From Macrostomum lignano (lineage: Eukaryota): a stretch of 64,000 nt of DNA. The stretch spans positions 1 through 64,000 of the forward strand of contig NIVC01002803.1 of the NCBI GenBank assembly GCA_002269645.1, read 5' to 3'. Made by a program: the position numbers and the translations under genes. Under the pieces are notes generated by a model. It searched no databases and was not told the origin of the DNA. It was given only the letters and a program-made list of their open reading frames with translations. Shown one piece after another: positions 47,390 through 51,700 of the stretch; positions within the stretch are counted from its first letter, which is position 1; every line of letters begins with the position of its first letter.

Positions 47390-48670
47390 TCAACCGCCTC
47401 CCTCCCAGTCCCTTTTGATCAGCCGCCTTCCTCTCAATCCCTTTGATCACCCGCCTCCCTCCCAGTTAGTTCCTTTTATCAACCGCCTTCCTCCCAATCC
47501 CTTTGATGAGCCGCCTCCATCCCAGTTCGTTTTATCAACCGCCTTCCTCCCAGTCGCTTTGATAAGCCACCATCTCCCACAGTCCCTTTGATCAGCCGCC
47601 ATCTCTCACAGTCCCTTTGATCAGCCGCCATTTCCCACAGTCCCTTTGATCAGCCGCCATTTCCCACAGTCCCTTTGATCAGCCGCCTCCATCCCAGTTC
47701 GTTTTATCAATCGCCTTCCTCCCAGTCGCTTTGATAAGCCACCATCTCCCACAGTCCCTTTGATCAGCCGCCATTTCCCACAGTCCCTTTGATCAGCCGC
47801 CATCTCCCACAGTCCCTTTGATCAGCCGCCATCTCCCACAGTCCCTTTGATCAGCCGCCATCTCTCACAGTCCCTTTGATCAGCCGCCATTTCCCACAGT
47901 CCCTTTGATCAGCCGCCATCTCCCACAATCCCTCTGATTAGCCGCCATCTCCCACAATCCCTCTGATTAGCCGCCATCTCCCACAGTCCCTTTGATCAGC
48001 CGCCATCTCCCACAATCAATCTGATTAGCCGCCATCTCCCACAGTCCCTTTGATCAGCCGCCATCTCCCACAATCCCTCTGATTAGCCGCCATCTCCCAC
48101 AGTCCCTTTGATCAGCCGCCATCTCCCACAATCAATCTGATTAGCCGCCATCTCCCACAGTCCCTTTGATCAGCCGCCATCTCCCACAATCCCTCTGATT
48201 AGCCGCCATCTCCCACAGTCCCTTTGATCAGCCGCCATCTCCTACAATCAATCTGATTAGCCGCCATCTCCCACAGTCCCTTTGATCAGCCGCCATCTCC
48301 CACAATCCTCTGATTAGCCGCCATCTCCCACAATCCCTCTGATTAGCCGCCATCTCCCACAATCCCTCTGATTAGCCGCCATCTCCCACAATCCTCTGAT
48401 TAGCCGCCATCTCCCACAATCCCTCTGATTAGCCGCCATCTCCCACAATATCTCTGATTAGCCGCCATCTCCCACAATCCCTTTGATTAGCCGCCATCTC
48501 CCACAATCCCTCTGATTAGCCGCCATCTCCCACAATCCCTCTGATTAGCCGCCATCTCCCACAGTCCCTTTGATTAACCGCCATCTCCCACAATCCCTCT
48601 GATTAGCCGCCATCTCCCACAATCAATCTGATTAGCCGCCATCTCCCACAGTCCCTCTGATCAGCCGCCC
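47390..48670. repeat. 29-bp minisatellite filling the KRR1-PKC spacer
   Basis: Unit TGAT(C/T)AGCCGCCATCTCCCACA(G/A)TCCCT(T/C). Confidence 0.95.
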
Positions 48671-48705
48671 CCGATAATTAGCCGCTCTCTACCGCTCTGC
48701 TTCAG

Positions 48706-51700
48706 GCAACTGGACTGCCCCCAGCGGACAAGGAGCCACTGGTGTACTTCAATGGCACCATTCGAGTCCGGGTTATCGAGGCCAGGGACCTGGAGCCCAC
48801 GGCATATGCTGTTCGGCACCTGCCGTCCAAGCAGCTGCTTGAAGTCATGGACTGCTACACCGTGGTTGATCTGCACGACGACGACAGCGCCACCCGATTG
48901 CTGAAAACTTCCGTGAAACGGAAAAGCAATTCGCCTCACTGGGGCGAAGAGGTCACGTGGGAGGCGCACAACTCGCAGAAGCTGGTGTTCACCGTGTTCC
49001 ATAGCACCGCCTTTCCGCCAGACGACTTCGTTGCCGATGTTAATCTGTCATTCGACGATATGAAACCGAATTGGGACACCTGGCTTCAGCTTGAGCCCTG
49101 CGGCCAGTTGCACGTGTACATCGATCTGAAGGGCAGCATCTCGGAGGAGAAGCCGCCAGAGCATCGCCTGCAAATTGCTTCGAAGAAGCAGCCAGTCAGG
49201 CGGGGTGCCGTGAGGCGTCGGGTGCACCAGGTGAGCAAGAAGAGAAAGTGCTCAGTGTGCTTTGAGTTGGAAGTGCTCAGTGTGCTTTGAGTAGAGAGAG
49301 AGTGCTCAGTGTGCTTTGAGTTTGGAGTGCTCAGTGTGCTTTGAGTAGAGAGAGAGTGCTCAGTGTGCTTTGAGTTGGGAGTGCTCAGTGTGCTTTGAGT
49401 AGAGAGAGAGTGCTCAGTGTGCTTTGAGTTGGGAGTGCTCAGTGTGCTTTAAGTAGAGAGAGAGTGCTCAGTGTGCTTTGAGTTGGGAGTGCTTAGTGTG
49501 CTTTGAGTTGGGAGTGCTCAGTGTGCTTTGGGTAGTGAGAGTGCTCAGTGTGCTTTGAGTTGGGAGTGCTCAGTGTGCTTTGAGTAGAGAGAGAGTGCTC
49601 AGTGTGCTTTGAGTTGGGAGTGCTCAGTGTGCTTTGAGTTGGGAGTGCTCAGTGTGCTTTGAGTAGAGAGAGAGTGCTCAGTGTGCTTTGAGTTGGGAGT
49701 GCTCAGTGTGCTTTAAGTAGAGAGAGAGTGCTCAGTGTGCTTTGAGTTGGGAGTGCTCAGTGTGCTTTGAGTAGAGAGAGAGTGCTCAGTGTGCTTTGAG
49801 TTGGGAGTGCTCAGTGTGCTTTAAGTAGAGAGAGAGTGCTCAGTGTGCTTTGAGTTGGGAGTGCTTAGTGTGCTTTGAGTTGGGAGTGCTCAGTGTGCTT
49901 TGGGTAGTGAGAGTGCTCAGTGTGCTTTGAGTTGGGAGTGCTCAGTGTGCTTTGAGTAGAGAGAGAGTGCTCAGTGTGCTTTGAGTTGGGAGTGCTCAGT
50001 GTGCTTTGAGTAGAGAGAGAGTGCTCAGTGTGCTTTGAGTTGGGAATGCTCAGTGTGCTTTGAGTAGAGAGAGAGTGCTCAGTGTGCTTTGAGTTGGGAG
50101 TGCTCAGTGTGCTTTGAGTAGAGAGAGAGTGCTCAGTGTGCTTTGAGTTGGGAGTGCTCAGTGTGCTTTAAGTAGAGAGAGTGCTCAGTGTGCTTTGAGT
50201 TGGGAGTGCTCAGTGTGCTTTGAGTTGGGAGTGCTCAGTGTGCTTTGAGTAGAGAGAGAGTGCTCAGTGTGCTTTGAGTTGGGAGTGCTCAGTGTGCTTT
50301 GAGTAGAGAGAGAGTGCTCAGTGTGCTTTGAGTTGGGAGTGCTCAGTGTGCTTTGAGTAGAGAGAGAGTGCTCAGTGTGCTTTGAGTTGGGAGTGCTCAG
50401 TGTGCTTTAAGTAGAGAGAGAGTGCTCAGTGTGCTTTGAGTTGGGAGTGCTCAGTGTGCTTTAAGTAGAGAGAGAGTGCTCAGTGTGCTTTGAGTTGGGA
50501 GTGCTCAGTGTGCTTTGAGTTGGGAGTGCTCAGTGTGCTTTGGGTAGTGAGAGTGCTCAGTGTGCTTTGGGTAGTGAGAGCCCTCAGTGTGATTTGGGTA
50601 GAGAGAGTGCTGTATTACTTCGAAAGTGCTCAGTAGGCTGTGAATAGATAAAGTGCTTAAATTCTACCTAAAAAGAAAGTGCCAGCTGTCCTCAGTATTT
50701 GGGGTGCTCAGATGCCACTGATAATTTGGCCAGCAGCAACATTATGCGAGTCCAGGTACTCAATCTGCACAATCTCAACCCATCCGATGGCAGGTGAACG
50801 GGCACAAATTCATGGTTACAATATTTCGCCAGCCGACATTCTGCTCAATGTGCGAGAGCTTCATCTGGGGCCTGTGGAACCAGGGCTACCAGTGCCAGGC
50901 CTGCACCTGCGTTGTGCACAAGCGCTGCCATCAGAACGTGGTGACCGCTGTCCAAGCTGAAGGTGAGCAACAGGTCACGCCGCTTACTGGGGCCAGGTTT
51001 AACATCAACGTGCCGCACAAGTTCGAGGAGCACAACTATATGCGGTTCACCTTCTGCGATCACTGCGGCTCGCTGCTGTACGGCCTGAGGAAGCAGGGCC
51101 TGCAGTGCAGCATCTGCAAGCTCAATGTGCACAAGCGCTGCCAGCCTAATGTGGCGCCAGCTGCGGCGTCTCCAAGAAGGACATGGCCCGCATCCTTATG
51201 GACATCAACATTCACGTCGGCGACCTCACTAAGCGGCCATCGTCAGCTAAGAAATCCATTTCTGGTCCGGTTGGCGCCGCCGAAACTGGAAGCGCCGGCG
51301 CTGGCTCAGCAGCAGCTAGCGCTGCTGCCGCCGCAGCTGCCGCCTCAGCCGGTCCGCTGTTCGTAGCCAACCGGAGCACCTCGGCGCCGATGCCCGCCGC
51401 CGACGACATGTCACTGCCGCCGCCAGCTGGCGGAGTCGGCGGCCTCACGGTTGGCGCCGCCGCCGTCGGTGGCGCCGGTTTACGACGCGCCGGTTCGGCC
51501 GATTTCGCGCGAGCGCCGGTGACGCTGTCGGACTTCAGCCTGTCAAGGTGCTGGGCAAGGCTCCTTCGGCAAGGTCATGCTGGCGGAGTACAAGCGCACA
51601 GGCGAGATCTTCGCCGTCAAGGTGTTGAAGAAGGACGTCATTGTGCAGGACGACGACGTCGAGTGCACCATGACGGAGCGCCGGATCCTGGCCCTGGCCG

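Follow-up and report, generated by a model that had tools for sequence, protein, structure and literature searches.

A novel-type protein kinase C gene of Macrostomum lignano that lacks its own start codon and probably takes its AUG from the trans-spliced leader

The DNA considered here, referred to throughout as the window, is a stretch of 64,000 nucleotides of the flatworm Macrostomum lignano (assembly Mlig_3_7, GCA_002269645.1, contig NIVC01002803.1, positions 1 to 64,000 of the forward strand), and it carries a protein kinase C (PKC) gene, deposited in GenBank as BOX15_Mlig029233g1, that has no start codon at the place where one would be expected (Table 1). Over 22,661 compared bases, the window and the contig record are 100% identical, and their coordinates coincide. 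On its sequence, the encoded kinase is a novel PKC of the epsilon/eta type. The order of its domains (C2, pseudosubstrate, C1A, C1B, kinase and AGC tail) matches that of the novel PKCs, Pfam recognises C2, two C1_1 and Pkinase domains in the window exon and protein P0124, and exon 1, when compared by sequence with known structures, matches the C2 domains of PKC-epsilon (1GMI, E=1.8e-21) and PKC-eta (2FK9, E=1.7e-15). The Pkinase_C domain is recorded in P0001 and P0002, which are full-length paralogues, and P0124 is frameshifted at its C-terminus. The top database matches of the composite exon translation were three M. lignano GenBank proteins, each of them labelled 'partial', and the best matches are named 'calcium-independent protein kinase C'. 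The arrangement of C2, pseudosubstrate, two C1 domains, kinase and AGC tail is common to this gene and to the novel PKCs of the epsilon/eta type from other animals, such as Aplysia Apl II, Drosophila Pkc98E, and vertebrate PRKCE and PRKCH. Unlike these relatives, the M. lignano gene encodes 11 extra residues at the N-terminus and a leucine in place of the initiator methionine, and it is triplicated.

Three paralogue groups and at least seven assembled copies of nPKC epsilon/eta genes are present in M. lignano. The window gene has two sister copies, L001 and L004 (contigs NIVC01003608.1 and NIVC01001713.1); L002 and L005 (NIVC01000084.1) represent paralogue 1, L003 and L006 represent paralogue 2, and L007, an ENA contig, serves as the outgroup. 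As assembled in the window, the gene does not encode a complete kinase. By comparison with L001, its exon 2 shows eight single-base homopolymer indels between 50944 and 51558 (seven contractions and one expansion), besides one 3-nt indel. The deposited coding sequence (CDS) extends from 48706 to 51366, as the frameshifts end the protein early, and the 365-residue entry (P0126, BOX15_Mlig029233g1) is identical to the frameshifted translation of the window. The most likely source of these homopolymer changes is error left over from the long-read consensus in a duplicate contig that was poorly polished. The notion that the frameshifts mark a family of pseudogenes was rejected, as the sister copies encode intact proteins of at least 726 residues and all eight indels are changes in homopolymer length.

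Table 1. Positions of the PKC gene, of the KRR1 gene upstream of it, and of other genes in the window
Feature	Positions	Strand	Remarks
In-frame stop TAG	48679-48681	+	Closes the frame upstream of the acceptor
Polypyrimidine tract and candidate trans-splice acceptor CTCTCTACCGCTCTGCTTCAG	48685-48705	+	Last six bases CTTCAG
N-terminal extension, 11 codons	48706-48738	+	Translated only if the spliced-leader AUG is used
CTG (Leu) at the ancestral initiator-Met position	48739-48741	+	Counterpart, by alignment, of Met1 in 1GMI, the crystal structure of rat PKC-epsilon C2
First in-frame genomic ATG, codon 48	48847-48849	+	Within the C2 domain
PKC exon 1	48706-49230	+	Novel-type C2 and pseudosubstrate (GAVRRRVHQ); GTGAGC donor at 49231
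PKC intron 1	49231-50793	+	Filled by a 54-bp satellite at 49241-50580
PKC exon 2	50794-52179	+	C1A, C1B, hinge and the larger part of the kinase domain
PKC intron 2	52180-52669	+	(TATC)n repeat inside (52350-52640)
PKC last exon	52670-53062	+	C-terminal part of the kinase domain and AGC tail; stop TGA 53060-53062
29-bp satellite, 43.7 copies	47406-48669	+	Tandem Repeats Finder (TRF); fills most of the presumed outron
KRR1 gene	44201-47068	+	Upstream same-strand neighbour; Pfam KH_KRR1_1st and 2nd; annotated CDS 44213-47068
KRR1 trans-splice site	about 44190-44198	+	Just 5' of KRR1
KRR1 intron satellite, 21-bp unit	44853-46558	+	TRF
KRR1 stop	47066-47068	+	Read from the sequence
KRR1 poly(A) signal AATAAA	47151-47156	+	Read from the sequence
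PNO1-type KH-domain protein gene	8268-8978	+	
POT/PTR2 peptide transporter gene	15314-18946	+	Split by a satellite-bearing intron
Weak PPR-repeat protein gene	21961-24417	+	
Cytochrome-b5/fatty-acid desaturase fusion gene	31799-33217	+	

From position 48706 the reading frame is GCA ACT GGA CTG CCC CCA GCG GAC AAG GAG CCA CTG GTG TAC TTC AAT GGC (a slash in the sequences below marks a splice boundary), and its residue 12, a leucine encoded by CTG, occupies the position of Met1 in 1GMI. The frame is closed upstream by a TAG that sits 27 nt 5' of the CTTCAG acceptor, and the first in-frame ATG downstream is preceded by two ATGs that are out of frame, at 48752 and 48806. Since the Pfam C2 domain begins at residue 17 and this ATG is codon 48, a protein begun at 48847 would be missing the opening strands of the C2 domain. 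The initial annotation of this DNA had pointed to a CTG at the methionine position, to the upstream TAG with no ATG in between, and to the damage that a start at 48847 would inflict on C2; these observations were all borne out, and every position that it gave is correct. Among about 115 orthologues from outside Macrostomum, nearly all start with methionine at this position or within three residues of it, and the remainder consist of a few with a short N-terminal extension that nevertheless have methionine there and a few N-terminally truncated models. Orthologues of parasitic flatworms begin MEYFSG, and neodermatan, mollusc and other orthologues keep the methionine. None of the eight PKC epsilon-type entries for M. 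lignano in GenBank and UniProt has the initiator methionine, and the six in GenBank are labelled 'partial'. Codons 1 to 60 of the window are the same in L001 and L004, save for a synonymous ACT/ACC change in codon 2; in UniProt, the entry P0125, which was annotated independently, likewise has leucine at the methionine position. A sequencing or assembly error as the source of the CTG was therefore rejected, and the codon can be regarded as real, as the codon is found in both of the sister contigs and the residue in P0125.

The sequence immediately upstream of codon 1 offers a source for the missing start. M. lignano has a single 35-nt spliced leader (SL), CGGTCTCTTACTGCGAAGACTCAATTTATTGCATG, which ends in ...TTGCATG (PMC8629364), so that the supposition of the initial annotation that the SL of the host ends in AUG holds for this species; indeed, all flatworm SLs reported so far end in ATG (PMC12582326). 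The motif enriched at M. lignano trans-splice acceptors is [T/C]TNCAG (PMC8629364), and the window acceptor, CTTCAG, fits it. The pyrimidine-rich acceptor had been described as ending at 48705 in phase 0, and this was upheld, as the frame is open from 48706: an SL AUG joined there reads ATG/GCA ACT GGA... without a stop through the C2 domain, and the first extension codon, GCA, places a G at position +4 of that AUG. In the Mlig_3_7 annotation, the 5' ends of genes were set from reads that contain the SL and from de novo transcripts trimmed of it (PMC5730564), and the 5'-partial CDS starts at the first base after the AG, that is, at 48706 in the window and at the corresponding base of L001 and of L004. 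These observations support, indirectly, the view that the PKC mRNA is trans-spliced at 48705/48706. No Rfam family, and hence no SL RNA gene, was matched across the whole window, and a search of Logan and other collections for transcript-derived proteins starting MATGLPP turned up no M. lignano transcript contigs.

The sequence of events suggested by these features is as follows. A pre-mRNA would be transcribed from a promoter within about 1.5 kb upstream of the gene, or as a polycistron together with KRR1; the 35-nt SL would be trans-spliced to the acceptor ending at 48705, and the satellite-filled outron would be discarded. The terminal AUG of the SL would thus be joined in phase 0 to the GCA at 48706, giving an mRNA with a 32-nt leader before the open reading frame (ORF) and with the expected junction ...TTGCATG joined to GCAACTGGA or GCAACCGGA at 48706. 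By analogy with Schistosoma, translation would begin at the SL AUG. For this PKC gene, which lacks a start codon in its own sequence, the trans-spliced leader is very likely the source of the AUG: the SL ends in ATG, the acceptor fits the motif, the CDS starts at 48706, the phase is 0, SL bases appear in the sister copies, and no cis-spliced exon with an ATG can be assembled between KRR1 and the acceptor. The proposal of the initial annotation that the SL AUG serves as the start is in this sense supported.

The appearance of SL bases in the sister copies is connected with the way the assembly was made. Mlig_3_7 was polished by Pilon with Illumina DNA reads and RNA-seq reads (PMC5730564), and at the PKC junction L001 and L004 read cttATG/GCAACC where the window reads cttCAG/GCAACT. 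The window and the sister copies differ here at four places within 15 bp, two of which, at -3 and -2, are the substitutions that turn CAG into ATG; outside this cluster only two further differences occur in the 587-bp exon-1 region. A comparable change is seen at the junction of paralogue 1, which is CTG/GCT in L005 and CAG/GCT in L002, and at the junction of KRR1, where the window (44185-44203) reads CTCATG/CAGAAATGG and L004 (145-165) reads CTGCAG/CAGAAATGG, so that in this case it is the window that carries three adjacent substitutions matching CATG, the last bases of the SL. At the three junctions, all six substitutions within 4 nt turn the base into the SL base of that position, for which the chance expectation is (1/3)^6, a figure that takes no account of the locally raised number of differences; as a background, the copies diverge by about 1%. 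The ATG of L001 and L004 is read here as the footprint of an SL-ATG/GCAACC mRNA, left when Pilon 'corrected' the genome to RNA reads: reads starting with the last two to four SL bases would have aligned over the junction, and Pilon would have overwritten the genomic bases with them. The window copy retains the native CAG acceptor of PKC together with eight uncorrected homopolymer indels, in keeping with sparse read-based polishing of this copy. At 2-4 nt the imprints are shallow, and longer SL suffixes (TTGCATG and upwards) are not present in the window in numbers above chance, none of them lying convincingly at the start of a gene. By extension, Mlig_3_7 may contain corrupted acceptors and spurious ATGs at many of its trans-splice sites.

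The other paralogue groups show the same configuration. Paralogue 1 (L002) has TTCCAG/GCT GCA TCG at its junction and reads AASLAASNSDKGEEG-LVYFNG, with CTT (Leu) at the methionine position, and paralogue 2 (L003 and L006) has TTGCAG/GCA TCT GGA and reads ASGAPLPTSGSGEKASQPQLQGPQT-VICFSG (ASGAPLP...GPQT), with GTG (Val) at that position. All three groups show an acceptor in phase 0 followed by an open frame that lacks methionine and whose first residue is alanine. An in-frame stop is situated 27-57 nt 5' of the junction in six copies (window, L001, L002, L003, L004 and L006), and the sole in-frame upstream ATG among those six is the one that replaces the acceptor in L001 and L004. The extensions are homologous among the paralogues, 11-28 codons in length, and maintained in frame. 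In copy-to-copy comparisons, the 60 codons after the junction contain 1, 2 and 5 synonymous as against 0, 0 and 2 non-synonymous differences and no indels, and the 180 nt before the junction contain 10-19 substitutions and 8-22 gap columns. The N-terminal extension thus behaves as coding sequence, because the differences after the junction are mainly synonymous and free of indels and those before it include many indels. Its translation would yield the predicted N-terminal tryptic peptides ATGLPPADK from the window gene and AASLAASNSDK and ASGAPLPTSGSGEK from the paralogues.

A number of points weigh against an SL-supplied start and have to be set beside this evidence. The use of the SL AUG by ribosomes in Macrostomum would be an extension from Schistosoma, and the transcript evidence is second-hand, consisting of annotation boundaries and of a polishing imprint that is itself inferred. 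The window copy, with its eight frameshifting homopolymer indels, could be a pseudogene, though these are probably assembly errors. The Mlig_3_7 CDS of paralogue 2 starts 21-39 nt downstream of the acceptor, and the evidence for its junction consists of sequence features and older ML2/UniProt models. Finally, L005 (3971-4003) has CTG in place of the acceptor CAG, and a 2-base insertion puts an ATG 30 nt upstream in frame, so that its upstream frame reads M-KKYLNTHFL-AASLAAS... with no stop in between; lacking an acceptor AG and having an in-frame ATG, this copy could use a conventional start. The arrangement in L005 may be a coincidence combined with a polishing imprint, or it may be a reversion to a genome-encoded start.

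This last observation leads to the alternative that survives best, namely that the ATG of L001, L004 and perhaps L005 is truly genomic and stands either where a destroyed acceptor used to be or 5' of it, the locus being polymorphic for an SL-supplied and a genome-encoded start. If the ATG/GCA of L001 and L004 were genuine, those copies would be independent of trans-splicing; the window and these copies differ by genuine single-nucleotide polymorphisms at about 1% of positions, two of them within 10 bp of the junction, and L005 adds its CTG/GCT and its in-frame upstream ATG. It would nonetheless be odd for two adjacent changes to produce exactly the last bases of the SL at an annotated trans-splice site, and for the pattern to recur at two other junctions with every one of the six changes directed toward the SL, in an assembly documented as polished with RNA-seq reads (PMC5730564). 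Moreover, the transcript 5' ends of L001 and L004 lie directly after the ATG, as would be the case for SL-trimmed reads, and with the AG gone no trans-splicing would be possible at that point. A polymorphic start is for these reasons considered unlikely, and an ATG imprinted by SL-bearing RNA reads is preferred for the sister copies.

Less probable still is a near-cognate start at the CUG of 48739 or the GUG of 48742, whether or not the mRNA is trans-spliced. Both CTG and GTG are one step from ATG, position +4 is a G, and initiation at codons other than AUG is known in eukaryotes (a matter of general knowledge, also treated in PMC9851317). However, a ribosome scanning a trans-spliced mRNA would meet the in-frame SL AUG first, the C at position -3 of the CUG makes for a weak context, and paralogue 1 has CTT, which is not a near-cognate codon. 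In addition, the 11-28 codons upstream keep the frame and, in paralogue 2, differ between copies by four synonymous changes and one non-synonymous change, which indicates that they are translated.

A third alternative would have the ATG supplied by a cis-spliced upstream exon, either a dedicated first exon or one joined by read-through from the upstream gene. The acceptor is after all a normal splice acceptor, and cis- and trans-splicing have been reported to share acceptors in flatworms (PMC12582326). Furthermore, an automated model from the older ML2 assembly, P0128 (UniProt A0A1I8FV95), fuses an upstream glycosyltransferase (PF04488) to PKC paralogue 2 (L003, L006, about 1-3980), with the joint of the fusion falling exactly at the AG/GCATCTGGA acceptor. 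This fusion probably arose as an error of gene prediction for want of an ATG, although it could also reflect a polycistronic or read-through transcript; P0128 is a prediction of the ab initio type. Against a cis-spliced exon stands the sequence upstream of the window gene. The initial annotation had found no convincing ATG-bearing exon between the KRR1 poly(A) signal and the acceptor, and this proved correct: the whole interval from the KRR1 stop to the acceptor contains only five ATGs on the plus strand, and none of the five opens a frame that reaches a phase-0 GT donor. Between the poly(A) signal and the 29-bp satellite lie about 230 bp of AT-rich DNA, and the satellite itself holds a single ATG on its plus strand where shuffled sequences would have about 7.9. 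The transcript-based models of three copies end at the junction, and no gene was called in the 4 kb of sequence fetched upstream of paralogue 1. An upstream exon is accordingly held to be highly improbable.

Just as improbable is a start at the genomic AUG of 48847 with a truncated C2 domain, or a window copy that is a dead gene, for which the presence of that ATG and the eight frameshifts with a deposited protein cut to 365 residues can be cited, but against which stand the two out-of-frame AUGs that come first, the strong conservation of codons 12-47 among the paralogues and with the PKC-epsilon C2 structure, the lack of any in-frame ATG within 400 nt in paralogue 1, the homopolymer nature of all eight frameshifts, which is typical of unpolished long reads, and the intact proteins of the sister copies.

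If the SL does supply the start, the question arises of how the original one was lost. The closest relative found is L007, ENA ERZ25070786 ctg130630l, in which KRR1 lies upstream of PKC (204-6226), and a neighbour-joining tree places its PKC as the sister of the M. lignano trio of paralogues, with 200 of 200 bootstraps in support. L007 reads TGCTTTAG/GCT GCT TCT GAA GGC GCG CAT ATG GTG TAT TTC, and hence has both a phase-0 acceptor and the ancestral ATG, separated by an open extension of seven codons that starts AAS, as paralogue 1 does. The comparison with an orthologous locus, which had been proposed as a check, was thus made, and it revealed an in-phase acceptor alongside a retained ATG. 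The L007 PKC gene is a single uninterrupted, intronless ORF of 2226 nt, unlike its M. lignano counterpart, in which the introns are filled with satellites. The series is consistent with a scenario in which the SL AUG came into frame first, whereupon the original ATG would have become dispensable and been lost in M. lignano, where it is represented by CTG, CTT and GTG; in the window gene the ancestral ATG at 48739 would have decayed to CTG after the takeover by the in-frame SL AUG. This history presumes that L007 comes from a trans-splicing flatworm. With chances somewhat better than even, the whole nPKC epsilon/eta family of M. lignano would have given its start codon over to the SL in a manner that is hard to reverse, with L007 representing an intermediate in a stepwise neutral ratchet by which trans-splicing passed from being optional to being indispensable in a kinase central to signalling.

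The position of PKC downstream of KRR1 bears on how it is transcribed. The order KRR1 then PKC is found in L001, L004 and the outgroup L007 as well as in the window. Operons of M. lignano have been defined with an intergenic threshold of 1 kb (Ustyantsev and Berezikov 2021, PMC8629364), as genes on the same strand, less than 1 kb apart after adjustment for repeats, of which the second is trans-spliced, and the KRR1-PKC pair falls within this definition: the distance from the AATAAA of KRR1 to the PKC acceptor is about 1.55 kb, or about 270-300 bp once the 1.26-kb satellite is subtracted. It is thus possible that PKC is the second gene of a two-gene operon and receives its cap as well as its start codon from the SL. 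An operon context is evidently not required, because paralogue 1 is without a called gene in the 4 kb fetched upstream of it. As regards KRR1 itself, its own ATG (44201) is out of frame with an SL AUG joined at either candidate acceptor, and for this gene the SL AUG would open a short overlapping upstream ORF; the KRR1 acceptor of L007, TTTTTAG/ATT ATG GGT, is in frame, unlike that of the window. Long minisatellite and microsatellite arrays (with units of 21, 29 and 54 bp, and (TATC)n) take up the intron of KRR1 and, in PKC, the outron and the two introns, and the copy number of the arrays and the variants of their units differ among the three assembled copies of the gene.

Elsewhere the window contains four further genes (Table 1) and, on the minus strand at 40-3931, a GC-rich (0.66-0.69) fragment of a long terminal repeat (LTR) retrotransposon pol gene with reverse transcriptase, RNase H and integrase zinc-finger domains, upstream of which lies a gag-like ORF.

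The use of an SL AUG as initiator is not new, and the initial annotation had rated the novelty of the observation too highly, since SL-AUG initiation is already established for flatworms. In Schistosoma mansoni, as relayed in PMC9851317 from Cheng 2006, 28% of trans-spliced transcripts have the SL AUG in frame, and more than 40 cDNAs depend on it; ORFs of this kind are 'slORFs' in the sense of slORFfinder (PMC9851317). The authors of the Macrostomum genome, too, speak of the terminal ATG of the SL as a start codon for translation and did not trim it off for their annotation (PMC10468722). As far as the S. mansoni work (Cheng, Cohen, Ndegwa and Davis, J Biol Chem 2006) is represented in later accounts, the PKC gene shares with that type an SL ending in AUG, an acceptor in phase with the main ORF, the lack of a genomic in-frame AUG that would yield the conserved N-terminus, and an SL that would contribute both cap and start codon. 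It differs in that M. lignano is a free-living macrostomorph and not a parasite, in that translation from the SL AUG is here a prediction made from sequence, and in that the exact site of the ancestral ATG can be given and its loss followed over three paralogues against an outgroup that keeps it. With the SL and operon studies of M. lignano (Wudarski 2017, PMC5730564; PMC8629364) the case has in common the single 35-nt SL, the [T/C]TNCAG motif, a conserved gene of the type that has human homologues, and a distance of less than 1 kb to KRR1; those two papers do not discuss the effect of the terminal ATG on the reading frame, and the deposited models are just flagged 'partial'. The case adds a further gene family to the known examples, an ancestral ATG whose loss can be traced, and an explanation of the 'partial' flags.

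What is known of the mechanism as such is left unchanged by the PKC case. The M. lignano PKC entries are probably complete at the N-terminus once the SL methionine is added, and the same is likely for many of the 'partial' models of Macrostomum. Polishing with RNA-seq reads in a trans-splicing organism can overwrite acceptor AGs, creating false genomic ATGs and erasing real splice sites. The series of paralogues and outgroup illustrates how, once an SL AUG lies in frame, selection to keep the original start codon can weaken and the gene can become dependent on trans-splicing for good.

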